Made by a program: the position numbers and the translations under genes. Positions 37,417 to 64,000 of a DNA stretch of 64,000 nucleotides are shown here, piece after piece. The DNA is from Tubulanus polymorphus (taxonomy: Eukaryota; Animalia; Nemertea). Each line of letters starts with the position of its first letter. The stretch's first letter is position 1. The notes beneath the pieces were generated by a model, which made no database searches, was not told the DNA's origin, and saw only the letters and a list, made by a program, of their open reading frames with translations. The stretch covers positions 13,937,807 through 14,001,806 of the forward strand of contig NC_134031.1 in assembly GCF_964204645.1 (NCBI RefSeq), given 5' to 3'.

Positions 37417-37607
37417 ATCGCTTCTCGGCCTATTGGCTAAGATCAAAGTGTAGTATCTGTTCTTATCAGCTTAATATCTGATACGCTCCCCATAGGGGAG
37501 CTTCGATATTAAACTGATTTTTGGCACTAGGTGAAGAGTCAGGGGCTTGCTCCGCCTTCGCCACGAGTTGGCCTGGTATTGCAGTACCTCCAGGATCGGC
37601 TCACTCC
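37417..37607 (+). ncRNA. RNU2: U2 snRNA copy 1
   Basis: ATCGCTTCTCGGCC..GGCTAAGATCAAAGTGTAGTATCTGTTCTT; Sm site ATTTTTG; loop IV ATTGCAGTAC. 3' end +/-2 nt. Confidence 0.98.
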
Positions 37608-37615
37608 CTCTGGGA

Positions 37616-37638
37616 GTTCAATATCAAATAAAGATAGT
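37616..37638 (+). terminator. snRNA 3' box candidate; repeated in each unit
   Basis: GTTCAATATCAAATAAAGA about 9 nt after the U2 end. Confidence 0.45.
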
Positions 37639-39219: not shown

Positions 39220-39410
39220 ATCGCTTCTCGGCCTATTGGCTAAGATCAAAGTGTAGTATCTGTTCTTATCAGCTTAATATCTGATACGCTCCCCATAGGG
39301 GAGCTTCGATATTAAACTGATTTTTGGCACTAGGTGAAGAGTCAGGGGCTTGCTCCGCCTTCGCCACGAGTTGGCCTGGTATTGCAGTACCTCCAGGATC
39401 GGCTCACTCC
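39220..39410 (+). ncRNA. RNU2: U2 snRNA copy 2
   Basis: Same sequence as copy 1. Confidence 0.98.
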
Positions 39411-41022: not shown

Positions 41023-41213
41023 ATCGCTTCTCGGCCTATTGGCTAAGATCAAAGTGTAGTATCTGTTCTTATCAGCTTAATATCTGATACGCTCCCCATA
41101 GGGGAGCTTCGATATTAAACTGATTTTTGGCACTAGGTGAAGAGTCAGGGGCTTGCTCCGCCTTCGCCACGAGTTGGCCTGGTATTGCAGTACCTCCAGG
41201 ATCGGCTCACTCC
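41023..41213 (+). ncRNA. RNU2: U2 snRNA copy 3
   Basis: Same sequence as copy 1. Confidence 0.98.
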
Positions 41214-42826
41214 CTCTGGGAGTTCAATATCAAATAAAGATAGTTGAGCCTAGGTCTATCCTCGCTTACCAGGTTCTGTTTGGCTCACGCCAACACGAGC
41301 TCTGTCTGTAGGCCTAAGATTTTTTTGGGTGCACGGGTGGCCGCTTAGCGGCCACCAGCGATTAGCCAATCGCACGCGTGAAAAACAACGTATCTGATTG
41401 GCTTAAATACTTATAAATCTCTGGCGATGTAATAGGCCGATGAATGGTTTGCGGCCAGGGTTTGTGTGGGCGTGAGCTTCGGCTTCAGTTCCAGAGAAGA
41501 TCTAGACCATTAACAAACTGACCTTGACCTGGGCTCCGGCGTAATGTCGAAGTACATAATACGTAGAATATGCGTTGCGTAATTACGAATCAATGACGGA
41601 AGTTGAATTCCGTCGTCTGTCGTCGATTTATTCGCTTCATTGGACTGTGAGTATATATTTACCATCCATGAATACTTTCGATCCATCAATCATCGCCCAA
41701 TCGGGATCTCCGAATCAGTTGAAATACTTTCCGTCTTAAGTTTTAGCAACCAACGCTGAATTTCACGGCAAGTCATCTTATCCGGAGGCAAAGAAATCGA
41801 AGCTAGCAACCGCATTACTGAGTAACATAGCAACTTTTTTCGGTGATATCATAGCAACCGGTGGCATGATAAGGGTTCGAGTCCCGATTTATTGCGCTGT
41901 CATATCGGGCCACAGCGTATTCAAACCGTGTGCCTAATAAATATCGAGTATCGACCTACGTTTATCCATATACGCGAGAAAGATTCACCCTGACTGCAAA
42001 CTAGTAAAGGGCCTAGAGTTGAGTAGGCTTCGCCGAGACCGGGAAGCGCGTAGCGCAGGACCCCAAAAATAGTACCTAGATCAATGGAACCAGCCACAGG
42101 TAGGGCAGTGAAACGGTAGGCTAATTCAACAAATAGGAGAGTCGACGGAAAACTGATGTATGTGCGAAATCCGTGGATCCTGAGAGGCAAATCGATGAAA
42201 AAATAGAGGATTCCTTGGAACTATTTTGCTTGAAGTTAGAATACGGCGCCATACCAAACGTGGCAGTTCGGGGATTCCCTGCAATATCCGTACGACACCG
42301 GGGCGGTACCAATTCAAATTCAAATCATCCCGTTCCGCCTTTTTCCTTTCTAGACGACTATCATTTCAAAAGTTTGGATGGGCATGTGGAGAACGAAACT
42401 CACTTCTACGTAAAGTGAAGATGTTGGCGGCGGACAGCGAACGCATCCCGCAAATTGTGCGAACCACGTGTCGTAGCCTACCGACATCGTAGCGGTTACG
42501 CTTTTGGGTTGGTTCACTGAGCGTTTCACAAGTGTTTTTATCGCGACTAAAGTGTAGGATATTATCGATATTATGAATATTCGTAGGTAGTAGCAAATTT
42601 TCCGGGCATAATGAAGTTCACAATTTATTTGCATAATTTTAGATCCATCGTAGTGGCTCGAAATTAATACCGGAATATATGAAATCAATTCAATTTTCAT
42701 TTGAATGCCCTATCGAAAATTAAAATCATTCAAAAAGGTATAGCGCGTACATTTTTATATGTCTCACACAGTTGATGTAAATAACGGTTGTTCGACATAT
42801 ATATTGAATTGCGTTCATTCAACGGT

Positions 42827-43017
42827 ATCGCTTCTCGGCCTATTGGCTAAGATCAAAGTGTAGTATCTGTTCTTATCAGCTTAATATCTGATACGCTCCC
42901 CATAGGGGAGCTTCGATATTAAACTGATTTTTGGCACTAGGTGAAGAGTCAGGGGCTTGCTCCGCCTTCGCCACGAGTTGGCCTGGTATTGCAGTACCTC
43001 CAGGATCGGCTCACTCC
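42827..43017 (+). ncRNA. RNU2: U2 snRNA copy 4
   Basis: Same sequence as copy 1. Confidence 0.98.
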
Positions 43018-44629
43018 CTCTGGGAGTTCAATATCAAATAAAGATAGTTGAGCCTAGGTCTATCCTCGCTTACCAGGTTCTGTTTGGCTCACGCCAACAC
43101 GAGCTCTGTCTGTAGGCCTAAGATTTTTTTGGGTGCACGGGTGGCCGCTTAGCGGCCACCAGCGATTAGCCAATCGCACGCGTGAAAAACAACGTATCTG
43201 ATTGGCTTAAATACTTATAAATCTCTGGCGATGTAATAGGCCGATGAATGGTTTGCGGCCAGGGTTTGTGTGGGCGTGAGCTTCGGCTTCAGTTCCAGAG
43301 AAGATCTAGACCATTAACAAACTGACCTTGACCTGGGCTCCGGCGTAATGTCGAAGTACATAATACGTAGAATATGCGTTGCGTAATTACGAATCAATGA
43401 CGGAAGTTGAATTCCGTCGTCTGTCGTCGATTTATTCGCTTCATTGGACTGTGAGTATATATTTACCATCCATGAATACTTTCGATCCATCAATCATCGC
43501 CCAATCGGGATCTCCGAATCAGTTGAAATACTTTCCGTCTTAAGTTTTAGCAACCAACGCTGAATTTCACGGCAAGTCATCTTATCCGGAGGCAAAGAAA
43601 TCGAAGCTAGCAACCGCATTACTGAGTAACATAGCAACTTTTTTCGGTGATATCATAGCAACCGGTGGCATGATAAGGGTTCGAGTCCCGATTTATTGCG
43701 CTGTCATATCGGGCCACAGCGTATTCAAACCGTGTGCCTAATAAATATCGAGTATCGACCTACGTTTATCCATATACGCGAGAAAGATTCACCCTGACTG
43801 CAAACTAGTAAAGGGCCTAGAGTTGAGTAGGCTTCGCCGAGACCGGGAAGCGCGTAGCGCAGGACCCCAAAATAGTACCTAGATCAATGGAACCAGCCAC
43901 AGGTAGGGCAGTGAAAAGGTAGGCTAATTCAACAAATAGGAGAGTCGACGGAAAACTGATGTATGTGCGAAATCCGTGGATCCTGAGAGGCAAATCGATG
44001 AAAAAATAGAGGATTCCTTGGAACTATTTTGCTTGAAGTTAGAATACGGCGCCATACCAAACGTGGCAGTTCGGGGATTCCCTGCAATATCCGTACGACA
44101 CCGGGGCGGTACCAATTCAAATTCAAATCATCCCGTTCCGCCTTTTTCCTTTCTAGACGACTATCATTTCAAAAGTTTGGATGGGCATGTGGAGAACGAA
44201 ACTCACTTCTACGTAAAGTGAAGATGTTGGCGGCGGACAGCGAACGCATCCCGCAAATTGTGCGAACCACGTGTCGTAGCCTACCGACATCGTAGCGGTT
44301 ACGCTTTTGGGTTGGTTCACTGAGCGTTTCACAAGTGTTTTTATCGCGACTAAAGTGTAGGATATTATCGATATTATGAATATTCGTAGGTAGTAGCAAA
44401 TTTTCCGGGCATAATGAAGTTCACAATTTATTTGCATAATTTTAGATCCATCGTAGTGGCTCGAAATTAATACCGGAATATATGAAATCAATTCAATTTT
44501 CATTTGAATGCCCTATCGAAAATTAAAATCATTCAAAAAGGTATAGCGCGTACATTTTTATATGTCTCACACAGTTGATGTAAATAACGGTTGTTCGACA
44601 TATATATTGAATTGCGTTCATTCAACGGT

Positions 44630-44820
44630 ATCGCTTCTCGGCCTATTGGCTAAGATCAAAGTGTAGTATCTGTTCTTATCAGCTTAATATCTGATACGCT
44701 CCCCATAGGGGAGCTTCGATATTAAACTGATTTTTGGCACTAGGTGAAGAGTCAGGGGCTTGCTCCGCCTTCGCCACGAGTTGGCCTGGTATTGCAGTAC
44801 CTCCAGGATCGGCTCACTCC
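44630..44820 (+). ncRNA. RNU2: U2 snRNA copy 5
   Basis: Same sequence as copy 1. Confidence 0.98.
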
Positions 44821-46433
44821 CTCTGGGAGTTCAATATCAAATAAAGATAGTTGAGCCTAGGTCTATCCTCGCTTACCAGGTTCTGTTTGGCTCACGCCAA
44901 CACGAGCTCTGTCTGTAGGCCTAAGATTTTTTTGGGTGCACGGGTGGCCGCTTAGCGGCCACCAGCGATTAGCCAATCGCACGCGTGAAAAACAACGTAT
45001 CTGATTGGCTTAAATACTTATAAATCTCTGGCGATGTAATAGGCCGATGAATGGTTTGCGGCCAGGGTTTGTGTGGGCGTGAGCTTCGGCTTCAGTTCCA
45101 GAGAAGATCTAGACCATTAACAAACTGACCTTGACCTGGGCTCCGGCGTAATGTCGAAGTACATAATACGTAGAATATGCGTTGCGTAATTACGAATCAA
45201 TGACGGAAGTTGAATTCCGTCGTCTGTCGTCGATTTATTCGCTTCATTGGACTGTGAGTATATATTTACCATCCATGAATACTTTCGATCCATCAATCAT
45301 CGCCCAATCGGGATCTCCGAATCAGTTGAAATACTTTCCGTCTTAAGTTTTAGCAACCAACGCTGAATTTCACGGCAAGTCATCTTATCCGGAGGCAAAG
45401 AAATCGAAGCTAGCAACCGCATTACTGAGTAACATAGCAACTTTTTTCGGTGATATCATAGCAACCGGTGGCATGATAAGGGTTCGAGTCCCGATTTATT
45501 GCGCTGTCATATCGGGCCACAGCGTATTCAAACCGTGTGCCTAATAAATATCGAGTATCGACCTACGTTTATCCATATACGCGAGAAAGATTCACCCTGA
45601 CTGCAAACTAGTAAAGGGCCTAGAGTTGAGTAGGCTTCGCCGAGACCGGGAAGCGCGTAGCGCAGGACCCCAAAAATAGTACCTAGATCAATGGAACCAG
45701 CCACAGGTAGGGCAGTGAAACGGTAGGCTAATTCAACAAATAGGAGAGTCGACGGAAAACTGATGTATGTGCGAAATCCGTGGATCCTGAGAGGCAAATC
45801 GATGAAAAAATAGAGGATTCCTTGGAACTATTTTGCTTGAAGTTAGAATACGGCGCCATACCAAACGTGGCAGTTCGGGGATTCCCTGCAATATCCGTAC
45901 GACACCGGGGCGGTACCAATTCAAATTCAAATCATCCCGTTCCGCCTTTTTCCTTTCTAGACGACTATCATTTCAAAAGTTTGGATGGGCATGTGGAGAA
46001 CGAAACTCACTTCTACGTAAAGTGAAGATGTTGGCGGCGGACAGCGAACGCATCCCGCAAATTGTGCGAACCACGTGTCGTAGCCTACCGACATCGTAGC
46101 GGTTACGCTTTTGGGTTGGTTCACTGAGCGTTTCACAAGTGTTTTTATCGCGACTAAAGTGTAGGATATTATCGATATTATGAATATTCGTAGGTAGTAG
46201 CAAATTTTCCGGGCATAATGAAGTTCACAATTTATTTGCATAATTTTAGATCCATCGTAGTGGCTCGAAATTAATACCGGAATATATGAAATCAATTCAA
46301 TTTTCATTTGAATGCCCTATCGAAAATTAAAATCATTCAAAAAGGTATAGCGCGTACATTTTTATATGTCTCACACAGTTGATGTAAATAACGGTTGTTC
46401 GACATATATATTGAATTGCGTTCATTCAACGGT

Positions 46434-46624
46434 ATCGCTTCTCGGCCTATTGGCTAAGATCAAAGTGTAGTATCTGTTCTTATCAGCTTAATATCTGATA
46501 CGCTCCCCATAGGGGAGCTTCGATATTAAACTGATTTTTGGCACTAGGTGAAGAGTCAGGGGCTTGCTCCGCCTTCGCCACGAGTTGGCCTGGTATTGCA
46601 GTACCTCCAGGATCGGCTCACTCC
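46434..46624 (+). ncRNA. RNU2: U2 snRNA copy 6
   Basis: Same sequence as copy 1. Confidence 0.98.
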
Positions 46625-48237
46625 CTCTGGGAGTTCAATATCAAATAAAGATAGTTGAGCCTAGGTCTATCCTCGCTTACCAGGTTCTGTTTGGCTCACG
46701 CCAACACGAGCTCTGTCTGTAGGCCTAAGATTTTTTTGGGTGCACGGGTGGCCGCTTAGCGGCCACCAGCGATTAGCCAATCGCACGCGTGAAAAACAAC
46801 GTATCTGATTGGCTTAAATACTTATAAATCTCTGGCGATGTAATAGGCCGATGAATGGTTTGCGGCCAGGGTTTGTGTGGGCGTGAGCTTCGGCTTCAGT
46901 TCCAGAGAAGATCTAGACCATTAACAAACTGACCTTGACCTGGGCTCCGGCGTAATGTCGAAGTACATAATACGTAGAATATGCGTTGCGTAATTACGAA
47001 TCAATGACGGAAGTTGAATTCCGTCGTCTGTCGTCGATTTATTCGCTTCATTGGACTGTGAGTATATATTTACCATCCATGAATACTTTCGATCCATCAA
47101 TCATCGCCCAATCGGGATCTCCGAATCAGTTGAAATACTTTCCGTCTTAAGTTTTAGCAACCAACGCTGAATTTCACGGCAAGTCATCTTATCCGGAGGC
47201 AAAGAAATCGAAGCTAGCAACCGCATTACTGAGTAACATAGCAACTTTTTTCGGTGATATCATAGCAACCGGTGGCATGATAAGGGTTCGAGTCCCGATT
47301 TATTGCGCTGTCATATCGGGCCACAGCGTATTCAAACCGTGTGCCTAATAAATATCGAGTATCGACCTACGTTTATCCATATACGCGAGAAAGATTCACC
47401 CTGACTGCAAACTAGTAAAGGGCCTAGAGTTGAGTAGGCTTCGCCGAGACCGGGAAGCGCGTAGCGCAGGACCCCAAAAATAGTACCTAGATCAATGGAA
47501 CCAGCCACAGGTAGGGCAGTGAAACGGTAGGCTAATTCAACAAATAGGAGAGTCGACGGAAAACTGATGTATGTGCGAAATCCGTGGATCCTGAGAGGCA
47601 AATCGATGAAAAAATAGAGGATTCCTTGGAACTATTTTGCTTGAAGTTAGAATACGGCGCCATACCAAACGTGGCAGTTCGGGGATTCCCTGCAATATCC
47701 GTACGACACCGGGGCGGTACCAATTCAAATTCAAATCATCCCGTTCCGCCTTTTTCCTTTCTAGACGACTATCATTTCAAAAGTTTGGATGGGCATGTGG
47801 AGAACGAAACTCACTTCTACGTAAAGTGAAGATGTTGGCGGCGGACAGCGAACGCATCCCGCAAATTGTGCGAACCACGTGTCGTAGCCTACCGACATCG
47901 TAGCGGTTACGCTTTTGGGTTGGTTCACTGAGCGTTCCACAAGTGTTTTTATCGCGACTAAAGTGTAGGATATTATCGATATTATGAATATTCGTAGGTA
48001 GTAGCAAATTTTCCGGGCATAATGAAGTTCACAATTTATTTGCATAATTTTAGATCCATCGTAGTGGCTCGAAATTAATACCGGAATATATGAAATCAAT
48101 TCAATTTTCATTTGAATGCCCTATCGAAAATTAAAATCATTCAAAAAGGTATAGCGCGTACATTTTTATATGTCTCACACAGTTGATGTAAATAACGGTT
48201 GTTCGACATATATATTGAATTGCGTTCATTCAACGGT

Positions 48238-48428
48238 ATCGCTTCTCGGCCTATTGGCTAAGATCAAAGTGTAGTATCTGTTCTTATCAGCTTAATATCT
48301 GATACGCTCCCCATAGGGGAGCTTCGATATTAAACTGATTTTTGGCACTAGGTGAAGAGTCAGGGGCTTGCTCCGCCTTCGCCACGAGTTGGCCTGGTAT
48401 TGCAGTACCTCCAGGATCGGCTCACTCC
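48238..48428 (+). ncRNA. RNU2: U2 snRNA copy 7
   Basis: Same sequence as copy 1. Confidence 0.98.
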
Positions 48429-50041
48429 CTCTGGGAGTTCAATATCAAATAAAGATAGTTGAGCCTAGGTCTATCCTCGCTTACCAGGTTCTGTTTGGCT
48501 CACGCCAACACGAGCTCTGTCTGTAGGCCTAAGATTTTTTTGGGTGCACGGGTGGCCGCTTAGCGGCCACCAGCGATTAGCCAATCGCACGCGTGAAAAA
48601 CAACGTATCTGATTGGCTTAAATACTTATAAATCTCTGGCGATGTAATAGGCCGATGAATGGTTTGCGGCCAGGGTTTGTGTGGGCGTGAGCTTCGGCTT
48701 CAGTTCCAGAGAAGATCTAGACCATTAACAAACTGACCTTGACCTGGGCTCCGGCGTAATGTCGAAGTACATAATACGTAGAATATGCGTTGCGTAATTA
48801 CGAATCAATGACGGAAGTTGAATTCCGTCGTCTGTCGTCGATTTATTCGCTTCATTGGACTGTGAGTATATATTTACCATCCATGAATACTTTCGATCCA
48901 TCAATCATCGCCCAATCGGGATCTCCGAATCAGTTGAAATACTTTCCGTCTTAAGTTTTAGCAACCAACGCTGAATTTCACGGCAAGTCATCTTATCCGG
49001 AGGCAAAGAAATCGAAGCTAGCAACCGCATTACTGAGTAACATAGCAACTTTTTTCGGTGATATCATAGCAACCGGTGGCATGATAAGGGTTCGAGTCCC
49101 GATTTATTGCGCTGTCATATCGGGCCACAGCGTATTCAAACCGTGTGCCTAATAAATATCGAGTATCGACCTACGTTTATCCATATACGCGAGAAAGATT
49201 CACCCTGACTGCAAACTAGTAAAGGGCCTAGAGTTGAGTAGGCTTCGCCGAGACCGGGAAGCGCGTAGCGCAGGACCCCAAAAATAGTACCTAGATCAAT
49301 GGAACCAGCCACAGGTAGGGCAGTGAAACGGTAGGCTAATTCAACAAATAGGAGAGTCGACGGAAAACTGATGTATGTGCGAAATCCGTGGATCCTGAGA
49401 GGCAAATCGATGAAAAAATAGAGGATTCCTTGGAACTATTTTGCTTGAAGTTAGAATACGGCGCCATACCAAACGTGGCAGTTCGGGGATTCCCTGCAAT
49501 ATCCGTACGACACCGGGGCGGTACCAATTCAAATTCAAATCATCCCGTTCCGCCTTTTTCCTTTCTAGACGACTATCATTTCAAAAGTTTGGATGGGCAT
49601 GTGGAGAACGAAACTCACTTCTACGTAAAGTGAAGATGTTGGCGGCGGACAGCGAACGCATCCCGCAAATTGTGCGAACCACGTGTCGTAGCCTACCGAC
49701 ATCGTAGCGGTTACGCTTTTGGGTTGGTTCACTGAGCGTTTCACAAGTGTTTTTATCGCGACTAAAGTGTAGGATATTATCGATATTATGAATATTCGTA
49801 GGTAGTAGCAAATTTTCCGGGCATAATGAAGTTCACAATTTATTTGCATAATTTTAGATCCATCGTAGTGGCTCGAAATTAATACCGGAATATATGAAAT
49901 CAATTCAATTTTCATTTGAATGCCCTATCGAAAATTAAAATCATTCAAAAAGGTATAGCGCGTACATTTTTATATGTCTCACACAGTTGATGTAAATAAC
50001 GGTTGTTCGACATATATATTGAATTGCGTTCATTCAACGGT

Positions 50042-50232
50042 ATCGCTTCTCGGCCTATTGGCTAAGATCAAAGTGTAGTATCTGTTCTTATCAGCTTAAT
50101 ATCTGATACGCTCCCCATAGGGGAGCTTCGATATTAAACTGATTTTTGGCACTAGGTGAAGAGTCAGGGGCTTGCTCCGCCTTCGCCACGAGTTGGCCTG
50201 GTATTGCAGTACCTCCAGGATCGGCTCACTCC
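50042..50232 (+). ncRNA. RNU2: U2 snRNA copy 8
   Basis: Same sequence as copy 1. Confidence 0.98.
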
Positions 50233-51845
50233 CTCTGGGAGTTCAATATCAAATAAAGATAGTTGAGCCTAGGTCTATCCTCGCTTACCAGGTTCTGTTT
50301 GGCTCACGCCAACACGAGCTCTGTCTGTAGGCCTAAGATTTTTTTGGGTGCACGGGTGGCCGCTTAGCGGCCACCAGCGATTAGCCAATCGCACGCGTGA
50401 AAAACAACGTATCTGATTGGCTTAAATACTTATAAATCTCTGGCGATGTAATAGGCCGATGAATGGTTTGCGGCCAGGGTTTGTGTGGGCGTGAGCTTCG
50501 GCTTCAGTTCCAGAGAAGATCTAGACCATTAACAAACTGACCTTGACCTGGGCTCCGGCGTAATGTCGAAGTACATAATACGTAGAATATGCGTTGCGTA
50601 ATTACGAATCAATGACGGAAGTTGAATTCCGTCGTCTGTCGTCGATTTATTCGCTTCATTGGACTGTGAGTATATATTTACCATCCATGAATACTTTCGA
50701 TCCATCAATCATCGCCCAATCGGGATCTCCGAATCAGTTGAAATACTTTCCGTCTTAAGTTTTAGCAACCAACGCTGAATTTCACGGCAAGTCATCTTAT
50801 CCGGAGGCAAAGAAATCGAAGCTAGCAACCGCATTACTGAGTAACATAGCAACTTTTTTCGGTGATATCATAGCAACCGGTGGCATGATAAGGGTTCGAG
50901 TCCCGATTTATTGCGCTGTCATATCGGGCCACAGCGTATTCAAACCGTGTGCCTAATAAATATCGAGTATCGACCTACGTTTATCCATATACGCGAGAAA
51001 GATTCACCCTGACTGCAAACTAGTAAAGGGCCTAGAGTTGAGTAGGCTTCGCCGAGACCGGGAAGCGCGTAGCGCAGGACCCCAAAAATAGTACCTAGAT
51101 CAATGGAACCAGCCACAGGTAGGGCAGTGAAACGGTAGGCTAATTCAACAAATAGGAGAGTCGACGGAAAACTGATGTATGTGCGAAATCCGTGGATCCT
51201 GAGAGGCAAATCGATGAAAAAATAGAGGATTCCTTGGAACTATTTTGCTTGAAGTTAGAATACGGCGCCATACCAAACGTGGCAGTTCGGGGATTCCCTG
51301 CAATATCCGTACGACACCGGGGCGGTACCAATTCAAATTCAAATCATCCCGTTCCGCCTTTTTCCTTTCTAGACGACTATCATTTCAAAAGTTTGGATGG
51401 GCATGTGGAGAACGAAACTCACTTCTACGTAAAGTGAAGATGTTGGCGGCGGACAGCGAACGCATCCCGCAAATTGTGCGAACCACGTGTCGTAGCCTAC
51501 CGACATCGTAGCGGTTACGCTTTTGGGTTGGTTCACTGAGCGTTTCACAAGTGTTTTTATCGCGACTAAAGTGTAGGATATTATCGATATTATGAATATT
51601 CGTAGGTAGTAGCAAATTTTCCGGGCATAATGAAGTTCACAATTTATTTGCATAATTTTAGATCCATCGTAGTGGCTCGAAATTAATACCGGAATATATG
51701 AAATCAATTCAATTTTCATTTGAATGCCCTATCGAAAATTAAAATCATTCAAAAAGGTATAGCGCGTACATTTTTATATGTCTCACACAGTTGATGTAAA
51801 TAACGGTTGTTCGACATATATATTGAATTGCGTTCATTCAACGGT

Positions 51846-52036
51846 ATCGCTTCTCGGCCTATTGGCTAAGATCAAAGTGTAGTATCTGTTCTTATCAGCT
51901 TAATATCTGATACGCTCCCCATAGGGGAGCTTCGATATTAAACTGATTTTTGGCACTAGGTGAAGAGTCAGGGGCTTGCTCCGCCTTCGCCACGAGTTGG
52001 CCTGGTATTGCAGTACCTCCAGGATCGGCTCACTCC
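51846..52036 (+). ncRNA. RNU2: U2 snRNA copy 9
   Basis: Same sequence as copy 1. Confidence 0.98.
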
Positions 52037-53649
52037 CTCTGGGAGTTCAATATCAAATAAAGATAGTTGAGCCTAGGTCTATCCTCGCTTACCAGGTTCT
52101 GTTTGGCTCACGCCAACACGAGCTCTGTCTGTAGGCCTAAGATTTTTTTGGGTGCACGGGTGGCCGCTTAGCGGCCACCAGCGATTAGCCAATCGCACGC
52201 GTGAAAAACAACGTATCTGATTGGCTTAAATACTTATAAATCTCTGGCGATGTAATAGGCCGATGAATGGTTTGCGGCCAGGGTTTGTGTGGGCGTGAGC
52301 TTCGGCTTCAGTTCCAGAGAAGATCTAGACCATTAACAAACTGACCTTGACCTGGGCTCCGGCGTAATGTCGAAGTACATAATACGTAGAATATGCGTTG
52401 CGTAATTACGAATCAATGACGGAAGTTGAATTCCGTCGTCTGTCGTCGATTTATTCGCTTCATTGGACTGTGAGTATATATTTACCATCCATGAATACTT
52501 TCGATCCATCAATCATCGCCCAATCGGGATCTCCGAATCAGTTGAAATACTTTCCGTCTTAAGTTTTAGCAACCAACGCTGAATTTCACGGCAAGTCATC
52601 TTATCCGGAGGCAAAGAAATCGAAGCTAGCAACCGCATTACTGAGTAACATAGCAACTTTTTTCGGTGATATCATAGCAACCGGTGGCATGATAAGGGTT
52701 CGAGTCCCGATTTATTGCGCTGTCATATCGGGCCACAGCGTATTCAAACCGTGTGCCTAATAAATATCGAGTATCGACCTACGTTTATCCATATACGCGA
52801 GAAAGATTCACCCTGACTGCAAACTAGTAAAGGGCCTAGAGTTGAGTAGGCTTCGCCGAGACCGGGAAGCGCGTAGCGCAGGACCCCAAAAATAGTACCT
52901 AGATCAATGGAACCAGCCACAGGTAGGGCAGTGAAACGGTAGGCTAATTCAACAAATAGGAGAGTCGACGGAAAACTGATGTATGTGCGAAATCCGTGGA
53001 TCCTGAGAGGCAAATCGATGAAAAAATAGAGGATTCCTTGGAACTATTTTGCTTGAAGTTAGAATACGGCGCCATACCAAACGTGGCAGTTCGGGGATTC
53101 CCTGCAATATCCGTACGACACCGGGGCGGTACCAATTCAAATTCAAATCATCCCGTTCCGCCTTTTTCCTTTCTAGACGACTATCATTTCAAAAGTTTGG
53201 ATGGGCATGTGGAGAACGAAACTCACTTCTACGTAAAGTGAAGATGTTGGCGGCGGACAGCGAACGCATCCCGCAAATTGTGCGAACCACGTGTCGTAGC
53301 CTACCGACATCGTAGCGGTTACGCTTTTGGGTTGGTTCACTGAGCGTTTCACAAGTGTTTTTATCGCGACTAAAGTGTAGGATATTATCGATATTATGAA
53401 TATTCGTAGGTAGTAGCAAATTTTCCGGGCATAATGAAGTTCACAATTTATTTGCATAATTTTAGATCCATCGTAGTGGCTCGAAATTAATACCGGAATA
53501 TATGAAATCAATTCAATTTTCATTTGAATGCCCTATCGAAAATTAAAATCATTCAAAAAGGTATAGCGCGTACATTTTTATATGTCTCACACAGTTGATG
53601 TAAATAACGGTTGTTCGACATATATATTGAATTGCGTTCATTCAACGGT

Positions 53650-53840
53650 ATCGCTTCTCGGCCTATTGGCTAAGATCAAAGTGTAGTATCTGTTCTTATC
53701 AGCTTAATATCTGATACGCTCCCCATAGGGGAGCTTCGATATTAAACTGATTTTTGGCACTAGGTGAAGAGTCAGGGGCTTGCTCCGCCTTCGCCACGAG
53801 TTGGCCTGGTATTGCAGTACCTCCAGGATCGGCTCACTCC
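53650..53840 (+). ncRNA. RNU2: U2 snRNA copy 10
   Basis: Same sequence as copy 1. Confidence 0.98.
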
Positions 53841-55453
53841 CTCTGGGAGTTCAATATCAAATAAAGATAGTTGAGCCTAGGTCTATCCTCGCTTACCAGG
53901 TTCTGTTTGGCTCACGCCAACACGAGCTCTGTCTGTAGGCCTAAGATTTTTTTGGGTGCACGGGTGGCCGCTTAGCGGCCACCAGCGATTAGCCAATCGC
54001 ACGCGTGAAAAACAACGTATCTGATTGGCTTAAATACTTATAAATCTCTGGCGATGTAATAGGCCGATGAATGGTTTGCGGCCAGGGTTTGTGTGGGCGT
54101 GAGCTTCGGCTTCAGTTCCAGAGAAGATCTAGACCATTAACAAACTGACCTTGACCTGGGCTCCGGCGTAATGTCGAAGTACATAATACGTAGAATATGC
54201 GTTGCGTAATTACGAATCAATGACGGAAGTTGAATTCCGTCGTCTGTCGTCGATTTATTCGCTTCATTGGACTGTGAGTATATATTTACCATCCATGAAT
54301 ACTTTCGATCCATCAATCATCGCCCAATCGGGATCTCCGAATCAGTTGAAATACTTTCCGTCTTAAGTTTTAGCAACCAACGCTGAATTTCACGGCAAGT
54401 CATCTTATCCGGAGGCAAAGAAATCGAAGCTAGCAACCGCATTACTGAGTAACATAGCAACTTTTTTCGGTGATATCATAGCAACCGGTGGCATGATAAG
54501 GGTTCGAGTCCCGATTTATTGCGCTGTCATATCGGGCCACAGCGTATTCAAACCGTGTGCCTAATAAATATCGAGTATCGACCTACGTTTATCCATATAC
54601 GCGAGAAAGATTCACCCTGACTGCAAACTAGTAAAGGGCCTAGAGTTGAGTAGGCTTCGCCGAGACCGGGAAGCGCGTAGCGCAGGACCCCAAAAATAGT
54701 ACCTAGATCAATGGAACCAGCCACAGGTAGGGCAGTGAAACGGTAGGCTAATTCAACAAATAGGAGAGTCGACGGAAAACTGATGTATGTGCGAAATCCG
54801 TGGATCCTGAGAGGCAAATCGATGAAAAAATAGAGGATTCCTTGGAACTATTTTGCTTGAAGTTAGAATACGGCGCCATACCAAACGTGGCAGTTCGGGG
54901 ATTCCCTGCAATATCCGTACGACACCGGGGCGGTACCAATTCAAATTCAAATCATCCCGTTCCGCCTTTTTCCTTTCTAGACGACTATCATTTCAAAAGT
55001 TTGGATGGGCATGTGGAGAACGAAACTCACTTCTACGTAAAGTGAAGATGTTGGCGGCGGACAGCGAACGCATCCCGCAAATTGTGCGAACCACGTGTCG
55101 TAGCCTACCGACATCGTAGCGGTTACGCTTTTGGGTTGGTTCACTGAGCGTTTCACAAGTGTTTTTATCGCGACTAAAGTGTAGGATATTATCGATATTA
55201 TGAATATTCGTAGGTAGTAGCAAATTTTCCGGGCATAATGAAGTTCACAATTTATTTGCATAATTTTAGATCCATCGTAGTGGCTCGAAATTAATACCGG
55301 AATATATGAAATCAATTCAATTTTCATTTGAATGCCCTATCGAAAATTAAAATCATTCAAAAAGGTATAGCGCGTACATTTTTATATGTCTCACACAGTT
55401 GATGTAAATAACGGTTGTTCGACATATATATTGAATTGCGTTCATTCAACGGT

Positions 55454-55644
55454 ATCGCTTCTCGGCCTATTGGCTAAGATCAAAGTGTAGTATCTGTTCT
55501 TATCAGCTTAATATCTGATACGCTCCCCATAGGGGAGCTTCGATATTAAACTGATTTTTGGCACTAGGTGAAGAGTCAGGGGCTTGCTCCGCCTTCGCCA
55601 CGAGTTGGCCTGGTATTGCAGTACCTCCAGGATCGGCTCACTCC
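55454..55644 (+). ncRNA. RNU2: U2 snRNA copy 11
   Basis: Same sequence as copy 1. Confidence 0.98.
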
Positions 55645-57257
55645 CTCTGGGAGTTCAATATCAAATAAAGATAGTTGAGCCTAGGTCTATCCTCGCTTAC
55701 CAGGTTCTGTTTGGCTCACGCCAACACGAGCTCTGTCTGTAGGCCTAAGATTTTTTTGGGTGCACGGGTGGCCGCTTAGCGGCCACCAGCGATTAGCCAA
55801 TCGCACGCGTGAAAAACAACGTATCTGATTGGCTTAAATACTTATAAATCTCTGGCGATGTAATAGGCCGATGAATGGTTTGCGGCCAGGGTTTGTGTGG
55901 GCGTGAGCTTCGGCTTCAGTTCCAGAGAAGATCTAGACCATTAACAAACTGACCTTGACCTGGGCTCCGGCGTAATGTCGAAGTACATAATACGTAGAAT
56001 ATGCGTTGCGTAATTACGAATCAATGACGGAAGTTGAATTCCGTCGTCTGTCGTCGATTTATTCGCTTCATTGGACTGTGAGTATATATTTACCATCCAT
56101 GAATACTTTCGATCCATCAATCATCGCCCAATCGGGATCTCCGAATCAGTTGAAATACTTTCCGTCTTAAGTTTTAGCAACCAACGCTGAATTTCACGGC
56201 AAGTCATCTTATCCGGAGGCAAAGAAATCGAAGCTAGCAACCGCATTACTGAGTAACATAGCAACTTTTTTCGGTGATATCATAGCAACCGGTGGCATGA
56301 TAAGGGTTCGAGTCCCGATTTATTGCGCTGTCATATCGGGCCACAGCGTATTCAAACCGTGTGCCTAATAAATATCGAGTATCGACCTACGTTTATCCAT
56401 ATACGCGAGAAAGATTCACCCTGACTGCAAACTAGTAAAGGGCCTAGAGTTGAGTAGGCTTCGCCGAGACCGGGAAGCGCGTAGCGCAGGACCCCAAAAA
56501 TAGTACCTAGATCAATGGAACCAGCCACAGGTAGGGCAGTGAAACGGTAGGCTAATTCAACAAATAGGAGAGTCGACGGAAAACTGATGTATGTGCGAAA
56601 TCCGTGGATCCTGAGAGGCAAATCGATGAAAAAATAGAGGATTCCTTGGAACTATTTTGCTTGAAGTTAGAATACGGCGCCATACCAAACGTGGCAGTTC
56701 GGGGATTCCCTGCAATATCCGTACGACACCGGGGCGGTACCAATTCAAATTCAAATCATCCCGTTCCGCCTTTTTCCTTTCTAGACGACTATCATTTCAA
56801 AAGTTTGGATGGGCATGTGGAGAACGAAACTCACTTCTACGTAAAGTGAAGATGTTGGCGGCGGACAGCGAACGCATCCCGCAAATTGTGCGAACCACGT
56901 GTCGTAGCCTACCGACATCGTAGCGGTTACGCTTTTGGGTTGGTTCACTGAGCGTTTCACAAGTGTTTTTATCGCGACTAAAGTGTAGGATATTATCGAT
57001 ATTATGAATATTCGTAGGTAGTAGCAAATTTTCCGGGCATAATGAAGTTCACAATTTATTTGCATAATTTTAGATCCATCGTAGTGGCTCGAAATTAATA
57101 CCGGAATATATGAAATCAATTCAATTTTCATTTGAATGCCCTATCGAAAATTAAAATCATTCAAAAAGGTATAGCGCGTACATTTTTATATGTCTCACAC
57201 AGTTGATGTAAATAACGGTTGTTCGACATATATATTGAATTGCGTTCATTCAACGGT

Positions 57258-57448
57258 ATCGCTTCTCGGCCTATTGGCTAAGATCAAAGTGTAGTATCTG
57301 TTCTTATCAGCTTAATATCTGATACGCTCCCCATAGGGAAGCTTCGATATTAAACTGATTTTTGGCACTAGGTGAAGAGTCAGGGGCTTGCTCCGCCTTC
57401 GCCACGAGTTGGCCTGGTATTGCAGTACCTCCAGGATCGGCTCACTCC
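57258..57448 (+). ncRNA. RNU2: U2 snRNA copy 12 (G>A variant at 57339)
   Basis: As copy 1 except ccatagggAagc in place of ccataggggagc. Confidence 0.97.
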
Positions 57449-58576
57449 CTCTGGGAGTTCAATATCAAATAAAGATAGTTGAGCCTAGGTCTATCCTCGC
57501 TTACCAGGTTCTGTTTGGCTCACGCCAACACGAGCTCTGTCTGTAGGCCTAAGATTTTTTTGGGTGCACGGGTGGCCGCTTAGCGGCCACCAGCGATTAG
57601 CCAATCGCACGCGTGAAAAACAACGTATCTGATTGGCTTAAATACTTATAAATCTCTGGCGATGTAATAGGCCGATGAATGGTTTGCGGCCAGGGTTTGT
57701 GTGGGCGTGAGCTTCGGCTTCAGTTCCAGAGAAGATCTAGACCATTAACAAACTGACCTTGACCTGGGCTCCGGCGTAATGTCGAAGTACATAATACGTA
57801 GAATATGCGTTGCGTAATTACGAATCAATGACGGAAGTTGAATTCCGTCGTCTGTCGTCGATTTATTCGCTTCATTGGACTGTGAGTATATATTTACCAT
57901 CCATGAATACTTTCGATCCATCAATCATCGCCCAATCGGGATCTCCGAATCAGTTGAAATACTTTCCGTCTTAAGTTTTAGCAACCAACGCTGAATTTCA
58001 CGGCAAGTCATCTTATCCGGAGGCAAAGAAATCGAAGCTAGCAACCGCATTACTGAGTAACATAGCAACTTTTTTCGGTGATATCATAGCAACCGGTGGC
58101 ATGATAAGGGTTCGAGTCCCGATTTATTGCGCTGTCATATCGGGCCACAGCGTATTCAAACCGTGTGCCTAATAAATATCGAGTATCGACCTACGTTTAT
58201 CCATATACGCGAGAAAGATTCACCCTGACTGCAAACTAGTAAAGGGCCTAGAGTTGAGTAGGCTTCGCCGAGACCGGGAAGCGCGTAGCGCAGGACCCCA
58301 AAAATAGTACCTAGATCAATGGAACCAGCCACAGGTAGGGCAGTGAAACGGTAGGCTAATTCAACAAATAGGAGAGTCGACGGAAAACTGATGTATGTGC
58401 GAAATCCGTGGATCCTGAGAGGCAAATCGATGAAAAAAATAGAGGATTCCTTGGAACTATTTTGCTTGAAGTTAGAATACGGCGCCATACCAAACGTGGC
58501 AGTTCGGGGATTCCCTGCAATATCCGTACGACACCGGGGCGGTACCAATTCAAATTCAAATCATCCCGTTCCGCCT

Positions 58577-61347
58577 GAAATACGATTTCCACGAAGTCGT
58601 GTGTGAATGTATTCGTTTAAATACAATTACAGAATCTATGAAAATTGGCGTAATCACTCTCATACACAAAAGGGGGGAAAGAACACGCTTAGGAAATTGG
58701 AGACCGATTACTTTACTTTGTACAGACTATAAGATTATAACTAAAACTATTTCAAATAGGTTAATTACTGTTTTGACAGATATTATTGATCCTGATCAAA
58801 CATGTAATGTTAAAGGTAGACGGATCCATGACAATTGTCACATAATCCGTGACCTAATCCAGTATACCAACGATGAAAATATTGAGGCCTTTCTATTAGC
58901 GATCGATCAGATGAAGGCATTTGATCGAGTAGATTGGTCATATATGTTCAAATCCCTGAAATCGTTTGGCTTCGGCGAAAATATAATCAAATACATCGAA
59001 ATGTGTTATTCTGATCCCAAGTCCTTGATTAAAAGTAATGGTTTCCTTACAAATCCATTCTCTCTTGAACGAGGAGTAAGACAAGGATGCCCAATGAGTG
59101 CGCTTCTCTATATTATTGTAGCTGAAACCTTAGCAATTAGAATAAGGCGCGATCCAGAAATTGAGGGTATCACCTTGCCAAACGGGGAAGTGTGTAAAAT
59201 GAAACAATATGCTGACGATACAACCCTAACCTTAACAAGTATTGAATCAATCAAGAAACTTTTCCATGTTTTAACGGAATTTGAGCAATCTTCTGGAGCC
59301 AAAATAAATAAAGAAAAGACGGAAGGTTTATGGATTGGTGCCTCCAAGAATAGAACGGATAAACCCCTAAACCTAAATTGGTCAAACAGACACATAAAAA
59401 TATATGGCATGTATTTTGGTCTTGGTGACATCGATAAACTTAATTGGGAACGAAAGATTAACACAATTACAAACATAATAAATCAATGGCGACAGACTAA
59501 ACTGTCGTACAAAGGCAAACGGGTAGTTATTAATTCGTTCATTTTACCTGTCTTATGGTATGTCTCAGAAATTTATCCTATACCCAATATTTACGTCGAA
59601 CGTATTCAGAAAAAAATTAACGATTTTCTTTGGTCTTATGGTAAACATTATGTAAGAGCGGAGATAATCTATCAACCCTTAAGCAGTGGTGGATTAGCAA
59701 TTAATAACATTAGTTGTAGAGTAATGGCCCAAAGGGCACGAACTATCCTAGTAGAAATGAATCGAGGATCTAAATGGAGAACATTACTGAATTATTATCT
59801 TAATCAAGTGCTAGGACAGGGCTGGTCGATAGATTCCCTTATAAATGAAAATTTCATAAATAGAGAAACTCGGAATTCATACTACAAAAGCCTTTTAACC
59901 GCGTGGAAGTATGTGATGGCTCTCGTTGAACCGAAATGGTCGAAGCACGATATTAAGAATAACTTAGTGTTTAATAACCCCTCAATAACTGTCAATGGTA
60001 GGACCTTGAATTATCCAGAATATACTGACATAGGTTTAACAAATATCAAGCATTTCTTCGATGAATATGGTAATTTCAAAGATATTGATAATTTTACGCC
60101 GATATTAGTAGACGAAGGAAAACACAGCCGAATTTACGCTGCTATACCTCGCGAATGGCGGGTCACCCTGGGTGACGAAACCATTGATGATAATAAAAAA
60201 TCAGCTTACACAATTAAAATACAGAACTATAGAAAACCATTAGCTGATACTTCGATGCGCGAAATATATAATGCCATAGTCCATGCAAAATTCGGCCACA
60301 TAAAACCAATTAGTCAAAATAAAATCCAAACAATTCTAAACGAACATAACATAAATTGGGCTCAAATATGGGGAGACATTTATCATCCAATAACTGAGAA
60401 TAAATTAGGGGATATGCAATGGAGGTTTCTACACGATACCCTAGCTACAGCAACTAAACTCGTGACATGGCAAGTTTCTAACGACCCTACCTGTAAAATA
60501 TGCGGCCGTGCAGCCACTAATACGCATGTCATAATTGAATGTCCGGCAGCTGTAAGACTTTTTACTAGATTTCAAACGATAATAGCTCAGGTAGCAGAAC
60601 AACCAGCCCTCTTAACTAAACGTACAATTTGTTTTGGTTTTTCTAAACAAGCGATCATAAATCCACACAGTAGGCGTATATGTAACTATTTGATAACGGT
60701 CTTGAAATGGACACTGTATAAGAATCATCGCAAGGCATGCGCAGGAGAAACTGAACTAGATATGAAAAATTATGCTCGTAATTTTATAGCCAAACGATTG
60801 AAACAGGAGATTACGGCCAGGAAAAATATTAATGTTTGGACTCAAAATGAAACACTGATCAGATGCAACGGAAATAATTACTTTATAAATGAAATAGCAC
60901 TCAGTACGATTAATGATATTTTGTAAGGCCAGAAAAGAGCGTTTAGGTTTCTGTAAATAGCAATTAAATCGTTTCATACATACTATACATGTGACTGTGA
61001 ATGATGACTTGATATTTCTATACTAGACAAAAGTATTCCTATTTTGTAAATATAAAGAATAATTTGTGTCATTACGGATAATGTGTAAATATTGGAAAGA
61101 ATTAAACGATGTATGTATGATGTGTAGTGAAATGTTCCAGTTAATGCAGTTTGAATTGTCTTCTTAATATACATATACGACTGTTACTAACCAGTGTTAT
61201 GAATAACGTTTAAATCGAATTGAAAAGAATTAAATATACATTTATGATTGCTTGGAATATGATGTAAATACCTCCAGTCCCCCACCTGACTCCAGTTGGT
61301 GTGATGTAGTTGTTATGGAGCCTTCCTTTTGTAAAATAAAGTTTATA

Positions 61348-61392
<45 letters not shown>
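58577..61392 (+). mobile_element. 5'-truncated L1/Tx1-clade non-LTR retrotransposon inserted in U2
   Basis: Array identity stops at 58576; RT ORF; ~425-nt 3' UTR; AATAAA at 61335-61340; poly(A)42 at 61351-61392 followed by U2-derived GATCAAAG. Confidence 0.95.
58578..60926 (+). CDS. ORF2 fragment: RT plus C-terminal CCHC zinc knuckle; APE endonuclease missing
   Basis: NWRPITLLCTDYKI, DQMKAFDRV, RGVRQGCPMS, QYADD, SGAKIN..KT and CKIC.....TH...EC motifs; uninterrupted frame from the junction. Confidence 0.93.
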   Translation, partial: KYDFHEVVCECIRLNTITESMKIGVITLIHKRGERTRLGNWRPITLLCTDYKIITKTISNRLITVLTDIIDPDQTCNVKGRRIHDNCHIIRDLIQYTNDENIEAFLLAIDQMKAFDRVDWSYMFKSLKSFGFGENIIKYIEMCYSDPKSLIKSNGFLTNPFSLERGVRQGCPMSALLYIIVAETLAIRIRRDPEIEGITLPNGEVCKMKQYADDTTLTLTSIESIKKLFHVLTEFEQSSGAKINKEKTEGLWIGASKNRTDKPLNLNWSNRHIKIYGMYFGLGDIDKLNWERKINTITNIINQWRQTKLSYKGKRVVINSFILPVLWYVSEIYPIPNIYVERIQKKINDFLWSYGKHYVRAEIIYQPLSSGGLAINNISCRVMAQRARTILVEMNRGSKWRTLLNYYLNQVLGQGWSIDSLINENFINRETRNSYYKSLLTAWKYVMALVEPKWSKHDIKNNLVFNNPSITVNGRTLNYPEYTDIGLTNIKHFFDEYGNFKDIDNFTPILVDEGKHSRIYAAIPREWRVTLGDETIDDNKKSAYTIKIQNYRKPLADTSMREIYNAIVHAKFGHIKPISQNKIQTILNEHNINWAQIWGDIYHPITENKLGDMQWRFLHDTLATATKLVTWQVSNDPTCKICGRAATNTHVIIECPAAVRLFTRFQTIIAQVAEQPALLTKRTICFGFSKQAIINPHSRRICNYLITVLKWTLYKNHRKACAGETELDMKNYARNFIAKRLKQEITARKNINVWTQNETLIRCNGNNYFINEIALSTINDIL

Positions 61393-61394
<2 letters not shown>

Positions 61395-61400
61395 TCAAAG

Positions 61401-62405
61401 CTGCCTCCTTTTTGGCTTCAGGATAGCAAGCTCAGTCTATTTGCGCGCGGTGGCGGCTGGAAAGTTGCCTCTGGACATCGGTCTCACCAAAAACTAAAAA
61501 ACCTGACTGTGACATTTGATTCAGCGCACTTGCCGCCTCGGTGACTCATCGACGGTCTTTCATTACGCATAGAACTGTCGGCCAGCTATTGAAGCGGCGC
61601 GTGTCTAAGATCAAAACTGTAAATAAAACCCAAAATAGACTGTATCAAATAATTGTATGTACAAATACTCGCGTGCCTGTGTCGCTTTCCTGTTGACGGT
61701 CTATCAATGCGCATAGCACTGTCCGTTGGGCCGCGACGCATCCACGCACCTGTCTATGCACTGTAAATAGAAACACAAAACTGCTCCCGTATGAAACTTA
61801 TACTTTCAGGCAAATTCAGCACCAGACGTGAAGTACCAACTGCGCACCCCTTGACGGAGAAACCCATCCTCATTGGAGCTGCATCTTCGGATACCAGGAC
61901 CGTACTCTCATCTGGATAATTTGCGTTCAAAATGTGCTACTTTAAACTAATCAACATGCAGGGCGGACAACATAGAGGAATTTACACCAATATTTACTCG
62001 GAAAATGCAAAAACTCTCGGATTATTTACACGCGGAAAACGACCAAAAAAATTAAAAAAAACGAACATTACCGATCTTAGCCCCTTATAGTTATTTTCAA
62101 AGTTAGATGTATTAATTAGGCTTTAAACAACATAAACTCCCATCAGTCGCTTGCCGGTTCAGGCTGGATGGATGATTGTTCCGACGAACCGGAACCGACA
62201 TTTTCAATTATGTACTTCGATTTAAAAAAAATGATGTAACCTCGACCGACGACAACTCAACTACATTTTGTACTTCGATTTCCGATTTCAAAAACAAACC
62301 CCCTGTTTCGCTCCCGGCAGGTGTGGTGGGTATGTAAGGGACGCCAAATCAAACGAAATTTAATCGCAAAAGTTTTTACAATTACCAGTCAAATAAATAA
62401 GAGAT
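61401..62405. mobile_element. Unidentified ~1-kb non-coding insertion in U2 with a 10-bp flanking duplication
   Basis: AAGATCAAAG at 61391-61400 and 62407-62416; not array sequence; no long ORF and no TIR; AATAAA just before the right junction. Confidence 0.65.
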
Positions 62406-62575
62406 TAAGATCAAAGTGTAGTATCTGTTCTTATCAGCTTAATATCTGATACGCTCCCCATAGGGGAGCTTCGATATTAAACTGATTTTTGGCACTAGGT
62501 GAAGAGTCAGGGGCTTGCTCCGCCTTCGCCACGAGTTGGCCTGGTATTGCAGTACCTCCAGGATCGGCTCACTCC
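62406..62575 (+). pseudogene. RNU2: 5'-truncated U2 (nt 22 to end), promoterless
   Basis: U2 resumes at TAAGATCAAAGTGTAG; nt 1-21 and the upstream promoter are absent. Confidence 0.95.
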
Positions 62576-64000
62576 CTCTGGGAGTTCAATATCAAATAAA
62601 GATAGTTGAGCCTAGGTCTATCCTCGCTTACCAGGTTCTGTTTGGCTCACGCCAACACGAGCTCTGTCTGTAGGCCTAAGATTTTTTTGGGTGCACGGGT
62701 GGCCGCTTAGCGGCCACCAGCGATTAGCCAATCGCACGCGTGAAAAACAACGTATCTGATTGGCTTAAATACTTATAAATCTCTGGCGATGTAATAGGCC
62801 GATGAATGGTTTGCGGCCAGGGTTTGTGTGGGCGTGAGCTTCGGCTTCAGTTCCAGAGAAGATCTAGACCATTAACAAACTGACCTTGACCTGGGCTCCG
62901 GCGTAATGTCGAAGTACATAATACGTAGAATATGCGTTGCGTAATTACGAATCAATGACGGAAGTTGAATTCCGTCGTCTGTCGTCGATTTATTCGCTTC
63001 ATTGGACTGTGAGTATATATTTACCATCCATGAATACTTTCGATCCATCAATCATCGCCCAATCGGGATCTCCGAATCAGTTGAAATACTTTCCGTCTTA
63101 AGTTTTAGCAACCAACGCTGAATTTCACGGCAAGTCATCTTATCCGGAGGCAAAGAAATCGAAGCTAGCAACCGCATTACTGAGTAACATAGCAACTTTT
63201 TTCGGTGATATCATAGCAACCGGTGGCATGATAAGGGTTCGAGTCCCGATTTATTGCGCTGTCATATCGGGCCACAGCGTATTCAAACCGTGTGCCTAAT
63301 AAATATCGAGTATCGACCTACGTTTATCCATATACGCGAGAAAGATTCACCCTGACTGCAAACTAGTAAAGGGCCTAGAGTTGAGTAGGCTTCGCCGAGA
63401 CCGGGAAGCGCGTAGCGCAGGACCCCAAAAATAGTACCTAGATCAATGGAACCAGCCACAGGTAGGGCAGTGAAACGGTAGGCTAATTCAACAAATAGGA
63501 GAGTCGACGGAAAACTGATGTATGTGCGAAATCCGTGGATCCTGAGAGGCAAATCGATGAAAAAATAGAGGATTCCTTGGAACTATTTTGCTTGAAGTTA
63601 GAATACGGCGCCATACCAAACGTGGCAGTTCGGGGATTCCCTGCAATATCCGTACGACACCGGGGCGGTACCAATTCAAATTCAAATCATCCCGTTCCGC
63701 CTTTTTCCTTTCTAGACGACTATCATTTCAAAAGTTTGGATGGGCATGTGGAGAACGAAACTCACTTCTACGTAAAGTGAAGATGTTGGCGGCGGACAGC
63801 GAACGCATCCCGCAAATTGTGCGAACCACGTGTCGTAGCCTACCGACATCGTAGCGGTTACGCTTTTGGGTTGGTTCACTGAGCGTTTCACAAGTGTTTT
63901 TATCGCGACTAAAGTGTAGGATATTATCGATATTATGAATATTCGTAGGTAGTAGCAAATTTTCCGGGCATAATGAAGTTCACAATTTATTTGCATAATT

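Follow-up and report, generated by a model that had tools for sequence, protein, structure and literature searches.

A LINE family of the nemertean Tubulanus polymorphus that probably inserts at a fixed position near the start of small nuclear RNA genes

We analyzed a 64,000-nucleotide (nt) stretch of the Tubulanus polymorphus genome (NCBI RefSeq assembly GCF_964204645.1, contig NC_134031.1, positions 13,937,807 to 14,001,806 of the forward strand; this whole stretch is called the window below), in which a U2 small nuclear RNA (snRNA) gene of a tandem array is interrupted by element A, a very recent and no longer functional copy, truncated at its 5' end, of a probably still active long interspersed nuclear element (LINE) family of the L1/Tx1 group. 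The insertion position is not peculiar to this gene: related families, at least four of them, have used one position in snRNA genes of four types. We consider it probable that the LINE family inserts by target-primed reverse transcription (TPRT), in sense orientation, approximately 22 nt past the start of RNA polymerase II (Pol II) snRNA-type genes, and that what is fixed is the position and not the sequence.

A genome search with the 3' untranslated region (UTR) of element A matched nine further places (91-99% identity); as L008 and L009 are duplicates of each other, these amount to eight further independent copies. U2 follows the 3' end in none of these eight, and the window copy is the only U2 copy of A in the assembly. 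The copy at L002 (99.7% to A) lies instead in U1, in the order U1 nt 1-36, the element, A41, and U1 from nt 22, with a perfect 15-bp target-site duplication (TSD) and an Rfam U1 score of 91 bits. At L006 (96% to A) the poly(A) is joined to U5 at model position 23, with an Rfam U5 score of 41.1 bits vs. a gathering score of 40. Insertions into snRNA genes are thus found in three of the nine independent copies of family A (U2 in the window, U1 at L002, U5 at L006); the snRNA target genes together make up less than 1e-4 of the 268-Mb genome, and by a rough estimate the chance probability of three such insertions among nine is below 1e-10. Related families were found at the same position. In L012, which belongs to a family sharing the 3' tail motif, poly(A) is joined to U4 at approximately nt 22 (Rfam U4 79 bits, model 17-138). 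A second junction of poly(A) to U1 nt 22, at C10:1833418, adjoins the 70%-identical open reading frame (ORF) of a related family, and a second U5 junction, at C12:2336471, adjoins the ORF of a 73%-related family. The poly(A)-snRNA junctions recovered by pattern search are as follows.

U1: two junctions, one of the A family and one of the family with the 70%-identical ORF just upstream
U5: two junctions, one of the A family and one of the 73% family
U4: one junction, of the related family at L012
U2 with an intact downstream gene: one junction, of B', an apparently intact member of a sister lineage (B)

All insertions are in sense orientation relative to the snRNA gene, and the junctions fall between nt 21 and 22 of U1, between nt 22-24 and 25 of U2, between approximately nt 21 and 22 of U4, and between nt 22 and 23 of U5. 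Hallmarks of TPRT-type integration occur among the insertions: poly(A), TSDs of 8-15 bp and 5' truncations. Template-switch chimeras of the U6-L1 type were ruled out as a source of the snRNA-LINE junctions by the presence of snRNA on both sides and by the TSDs.

When the five nick sites were compared, no obvious common motif was seen. A [AG]CAC[ACT] motif is located upstream of the snRNA genes, with its first base 59-61 bp ahead of the snRNA start, and the distance from this motif to the nick is 81 bp in U1 (L002), 82 bp in U5 (the native gene in L037) and 83-85 bp in the U2 array. Two further A-family targets, L005 (TSD 6-9 bp) and L010, correspond to no known RNA and again give 81 bp. The overall range in these five targets is 81-85 bp, or 81-83 bp with the U2 nick read leftmost; the series leaves out the upstream sides at L003, L004 and L007 as well as the U4 and second U5 sites. 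The motif is expected by chance within a 7-bp range at ~0.04 per site. This suggests that the elements may find snRNA genes by promoter position, not by sequence.

Several observations weigh against this reading. By Rfam, five of the A-family flanks are not snRNA genes (L008/L009 counted once). The L008/L009 pair has neither a TSD nor the motif, L010 has no TSD, and the target at L005 is single-copy and gives nothing with Rfam at E <= 5. The U5 match at L006 spans model positions 17-60 only, and the target may be a U5 fragment. The upstream motif, which resembles a proximal sequence element (PSE), is short (4-5 fixed bases) and is a putative PSE only; distant families that share the 3' tail (L016, L027) do not have it. 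The sample is small, and the window copy has lost its upstream promoter, its own case depending on an inferred order of events that is set out below.

Some side observations concern other flanks and 3' ends in these families. An A-family insertion (L004:1943-2260, C7:12.88 Mb) and a B-lineage insertion (L053:4986-5290, contig C53) lie ~20 bp apart in two copies of one repeat, the start of which resembles U2 nt 6-14 plus nt 22-25; this repeat may be a U2-headed element similar to a short interspersed nuclear element or another preferred target. The same hairpin-forming flank (GAGTAATCAGAC..GTCTGATTACTC) follows three members of a family sharing the A 3' tail motif (L022, L028 and L029, on C11, C3 and C2), which suggests another repeated specific target or segmental duplicates. 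Across the related families, the RNA 3' ends of L012-L030 keep TAAGAT(A/C) just before the poly(A), for example ..AATAAAGTAAGATAT(A)n and ..TTAAGATCA(A)n, a motif that resembles U2 nt 22-27 and that family A has lost.

The features of the window and of its neighborhood that bear on element A are listed here.

37417..57450, + strand: U2 snRNA gene tandem array, period ~1804 bp, 12 intact genes, Rfam U2 182-187 bits each
57451..58576, + strand: array spacer, unit positions 194-1318, ending at the 5' junction of element A
58577..61392, + strand: element A, a 5'-truncated LINE copy with ORF2 remnant, 3' UTR, AATAAA and A42
61393..61400, + strand: U2 nt 25-32, the target remnant joined to the A tail and the upstream TSD copy of element B, by direct reading
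61401..62405, + strand: element B, the 5'-truncated 3' UTR of a sister LINE, 99.2% identical to B'
62406..62415, + strand: ten bases that are both the B RNA 3' terminus and U2 nt 22-31, without poly(A) at the window copy
62406..62577, + strand: what is left of the interrupted U2 gene, from nt 22 to its end (Rfam hit 62382-62577, 147.5 bits), after which the array continues
L054:2854 to L052:1079 (C7:14014660-14020885): B', an apparently intact LINE of 6226 bp in the last U2 array unit, 13 kb past the window end

Units of the U2 array are 99.8-100% identical by unit BLAST, and the array runs for 8 further units beyond the window end. Alignment of the unit halts at 58576 (unit position 1318) and restarts at unit position 22 at 62406; after this disruption, unit positions 22-1804 align at 100%. 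Absent between the array and element A are ~510 bp, namely the remaining 486 bp of the unit, promoter included, and U2 nt 1-24. The letters at 61393-61400 are GATCAAAG and are repeated at 62409-62416; local U2 genes read ..GGCTAAGATCAAAG.. at nt 19-32, which places the junction of element A at U2 nt 23/25-32. The local U2 gene has one A more than the vertebrate gene, so that numbering past nt 30 is one higher than in vertebrates. A scan of the U2 spacer for transfer RNA (tRNA) genes found none. An earlier note, made from the sequence of this stretch, had described the A tail as joined to U2 nt 23-32. The junction itself stands, but the flank after 8 nt is LINE B and not U2. The same note described a young L1/Tx1-group LINE with an uninterrupted reverse transcriptase (RT) frame, AATAAA and a pure A42, and this was borne out by the frame at 58578-60926, which runs for 782 codons without a stop and contains RVT_1 (E 3.6e-33), zf-RVT (E 4.7e-08) and a YADD motif. 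The frame is followed by a 424-bp 3' UTR (60927-61350) with AATAAA at 61335-61340 and then by the pure A42 at 61351-61392. Being 5'-truncated, element A is without the part encoding the apurinic/apyrimidinic endonuclease (APE) and keeps RT and zf-RVT. Its ORF aligns with residues 495-1270 of B' ORF2 at 48% amino acid (aa) identity over 781 aa, from which we conclude that the two elements represent sister families and that the truncation of A falls at approximately codon 493 of ORF2. Element A is ~100% identical to a copy on C3 and 99% identical to one on C7, and longer A-family copies lie at C3:13565497 and C7:12876660.

The closest copies of the repeat at 61397/61401-62405 (98-99% identity) extend upstream into coding sequence, which makes this 1-kb piece the 5'-truncated 3' UTR of a second LINE, B; its homology possibly begins at 61397 through an AAAG microhomology. 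In B', the upstream flank is U2 nt 1-37 with the promoter intact. ORF1 of B' encodes 346 aa and ORF2 encodes 1270 aa with an N-terminal APE (PF03372), RT (PF00078) and zf-RVT (PF13966). A Pfam search of ORF1 up to E <= 10 gave no match; an RRM-like stretch and a CCHC-like motif were noticed in it by eye only. The 3' UTR of B' is ~1.2 kb long and its terminal ten bases equal U2 nt 22-31, followed by ~24 A and then by U2 from nt 25. The B' TSD is U2 nt 25-37 (23-37 counting two A), and the 5' junction lies between nt 37 and 38. The B 5' region is otherwise unique in the genome. At the array edge (L052:3172-7500, C7:14022978-14027306) there is an older pair of B relics with exactly U2 nt 25-37 between them: the first is internally deleted, with ~84% aa identity and a degenerate A-rich tail, and the second is a B 5' end whose 5' UTR has a ~1.5-kb (ACAG)n microsatellite. 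At its end, one more B copy with an internal deletion passes into a degenerate U2 unit, and both the window B copy and L056 are joined to U2 without poly(A). The tally for lineage B is five copies or relics in or beside the U2 array and three truncated copies elsewhere; those outside U2 sit at TTAAGA microhomologies, none of them in other snRNA genes. The junction type of element A is seen again at four other insertions in or beside the U2 array, so its match to U2 is not due to chance. An exact genome-wide search for U2 nt 25-37 gave 9 non-U2 matches, approximately the chance level, none adjoining A or B. We concluded that lineage B is resident in this U2 array, at a site distinct from that of Keno/Utopia.

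Lineage B also has a large set of dispersed relatives (~78% identity in the 3' UTR), with ~2000 first-look candidates that have unrelated flanks and the 3' end ..TTTTAAGATCA(A)n. By Rfam, 17 such relatives all lie outside snRNA genes (a 5S spacer holds one, and another is 1.1 kb from U5), and this large family is therefore not snRNA-targeted. The first of these two (L035, C3:19019641-19023641) lies in the spacer of a 5S rRNA gene array and shares its orientation with a 5S gene ~90 bp further downstream, and the second (L037) lies 1.1 kb upstream of an intact U5 gene. Short internal copies of target sequence were seen in both sister elements. B' carries a 12-base copy of U2 nt 28-39 and an 11-base copy of nt 21-31 (B' positions 4934 and 5395), and the 3' UTR of element A (61205-61216) holds a 12-base copy of the U5 junction sequence; the chance expectation for such copies in A and B' is ~0.06 or less per element. 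Window positions 61604-61618 also belong to this set.

How a fixed position could be chosen is a more tentative matter, and we rate the following proposal a little below an even chance: the LINE clade may read the Pol II snRNA-type promoter (the PSE complex or the initiating polymerase) and nick the template strand ~22 nt in, whatever the sequence there, with sense copies using the host promoter and B later becoming a U2 specialist by means of its U2 +22 to +31 tail. In our main reading, held with more confidence, the endonuclease is probably placed by the snRNA promoter or by a complex bound to it, through a putative protein-promoter contact; the bottom-strand nick lies 81-85 bp after the PSE-like ACAC(C), at approximately +22 from the transcription start. 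In the window, B would have inserted first, leaving the promoter and U2 nt 1-32 upstream, a TSD of nt 25-32, and the AAAG microhomology at its truncated 5' end. Element A would then have landed at +22 to +24 of this promoter-bearing U2 stump, its poly(A) primed at nt 22-24, and its 5' end would have been joined with loss of ~510 bp of upstream target, resembling an L1-like target deletion. Element A is younger than B, as judged by its pure A42 and its ~100% identity to the C3 copy, vs. 99.2% identity of B to B'. The B RNA tail, which equals U2 nt 22-31, probably pairs with the nicked target and primes there, and such pairing with nicked U2 would probably account for residence in the U2 array. 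Sense insertion just past the start might also let full-length copies borrow the host promoter; in B', an intact promoter and the first 37 nt of U2 precede the element.

The least improbable of the alternatives to promoter-guided placement is an APE endonuclease that recognizes a loosely defined DNA motif or shape present by coincidence around nt 22 in more than one snRNA gene, the promoter playing no role. The longer hairpin loop of the B' endonuclease fits the Tx1L-loop chimera 2v0r. Target specificity in the Tx1 and R1 clades is generally explained in this way (PMC4640811, PMC4494074). We find this account unlikely nevertheless: no common sequence is seen at the five nick sites, and in four RNAs unrelated to one another the nick keeps its distance from both the gene start and the upstream motif to within 1-4 bp. 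The earlier note had proposed that element A belongs to a U2-specific lineage with a new U2 site ~15 nt upstream of that of Keno/Utopia, and had suggested tabulating the 3' flanks of other copies. It was right that the site is not the Keno/Utopia site, whose published flank begins at nt 39 (PMC4640811); the junction of element A lies at U2 nt 23-25, and sister lineage B reuses exactly that site. As a property of A, however, U2 specificity is now quite improbable, as its eight other independent copies lie outside U2, including in U1 and U5, non-U2 copies with clean TSDs are among them, and a single U2 copy of A exists in the assembly; the U2-resident lineage is the sister, B. The tabulated flanks did not turn out to be random either, as U1 and U5 were hit at the equivalent position.

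A different possibility is that the RNA of element A was mobilized in trans by the protein of U2-resident B, nicking U2 at nt 24, in which case the window copy would tell nothing of A's own specificity. The A junction is identical to the B' junction (poly(A) to nt 25), both RNAs are polyadenylated, and the apparently intact B' is only 13 kb away. We nonetheless hold this explanation to be improbable, because A-family copies occur in U1 and U5 at +22 where no B copy was seen, and the non-U2 copies of B sit at TTAAGA microhomologies, no other snRNA gene being among their sites. Accidental entry of a LINE without specificity into a safe-haven array, with the junction set by an A-rich, L1-like nick site, would agree loosely with a bottom-strand nick after TT at 5'-GATCTT/AG and also with the six of nine A-family copies that lie outside annotated RNA genes. 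That three of nine copies are at the equivalent snRNA nucleotide (see the rough chance value above) and that other families reuse the same nucleotides make it exceedingly improbable. Insertion at a fixed distance into Pol II snRNA-type genes is our preferred reading.

As judged from their protein sequences, A and B are APE-type LINEs of the L1/Tx1 group, an assignment that follows from the APE, RT and zf-RVT of B', its upstream ORF1, the poly(A), and collinearity with human L1 ORF2p. B' ORF2 is collinear with human L1 ORF2p (PDB 8uw3, 8sxt) over residues 3-880 (E 6e-80). The B' endonuclease scores 71.9 bits against 2v0r (LTX), which we take to be an L1 endonuclease (L1-EN) chimera carrying the Tx1L loop, vs. 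61.6 bits against native L1-EN, and the length of its hairpin loop fits 2v0r. This loop is a weak hint of a Tx1 affinity of B'. In a homologue search with B' ORF2 the best hit had 37% identity, and no named Tx1/Keno references were among the hits.

PMC4640811 gives Keno and Utopia in U2, Dada-U1 and Dada-U6 as the only snRNA-targeting transposons known at the time. Keno, a Tx1-clade element (PMC4494074) of vertebrates, lancelet and hydra, resembles the present elements: it is a polyadenylated LINE of the APE type, has RT and a zinc-binding domain at the C-terminus, and is inserted in sense in the 5' part of U2, and its U2 residence is matched by lineage B. In Keno, however, the 3' flank begins TCTGTTCTT at the boundary of U2 nt 38 and 39, whereas the A and B' flanks begin at nt 23-25. 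Moreover, family A is also found in U1 and U5 and a related family in U4, with only one of nine A copies in U2, from which it follows that the target is not defined by U2 sequence. Utopia inserts in U2 genes too, at times tandem in arrays and at low copy number, and U2 downstream of it starts at nt 39, the Keno 3' flank being identical (PMC4640811). Utopia differs in having a restriction-like endonuclease and a site between nt 38 and 39; here the endonuclease is an N-terminal APE and the site is nt 22-25, and the domain search found no restriction-like endonuclease in B' ORF2. Human L1 is also bicistronic and polyadenylated and shows TSDs, 5' truncation and target deletion, but it has a loose TTTT/AA preference and no targeting of a gene class, in contrast to the one recurring snRNA position described here. 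As a working analogy, TRE5-A and TRE3 of Dictyostelium and Ty3 of yeast integrate position-specifically beside RNA polymerase III (Pol III) genes via transcription factors (TFIIIB/TFIIIC), at a fixed distance from a promoter class with local sequence irrelevant. In those systems the genes are of the Pol III type and integration is outside the gene, whereas here they are of the Pol II snRNA type and insertion is inside the transcribed region and in sense. Dada DNA transposons target multicopy small RNA genes, namely U1, U6 and tRNA (PMC3706591, PMC8869645); snRNA genes are thus among their targets, but as DNA transposons they are another kind of element, and every one of their families uses sites of specific sequence.

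In our literature searches we found no LINE that targets U1, U4 or U5, or more than one snRNA gene, and the published list of elements targeting snRNA genes holds nothing for U4 or U5, nor for several snRNAs at once (PMC4640811). We see a considerable chance that the principle of targeting is itself new. For all the well-studied target-specific LINEs (R1, R2, Keno, Utopia, TRAS/SART), the explanation is that a single DNA sequence is recognized; insertion at the same distance from four unrelated snRNA starts would instead indicate that a Pol II promoter complex is what the element recognizes. If true, the present LINE would have no known precedent in reading a Pol II promoter class, and insertion would be linked directly to promoter borrowing, in a genome that offers a very young and probably still active system. 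A generalist element of snRNA starts could also yield a U2-resident specialist through an RNA 3' end that mimics the target. Target-specific LINEs serve as natural models for programmable RNA-templated gene insertion.

Three minor observations concern U2 sequences outside the array. A lone divergent U2 variant (L057:3983-4191; C7:3853011-3853190, minus strand) is uninterrupted, with 77% identity to the array gene and an Rfam score of 118.7 bits, and has its own ACAC motif and TATA-like box, spaced as in the array genes. At L071 (C6:951182-951594, minus strand) U2 nt 4-39 is fused to unrelated sequence exactly where Keno/Utopia-type elements would start; this may be a relic of another U2-targeting element or a U2-headed retrocopy. 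At L075 (C10:13801391-13801803) a tailless piece of U2, approximately nt 8-55, lies between 18-bp direct repeats and is retropseudogene-like.

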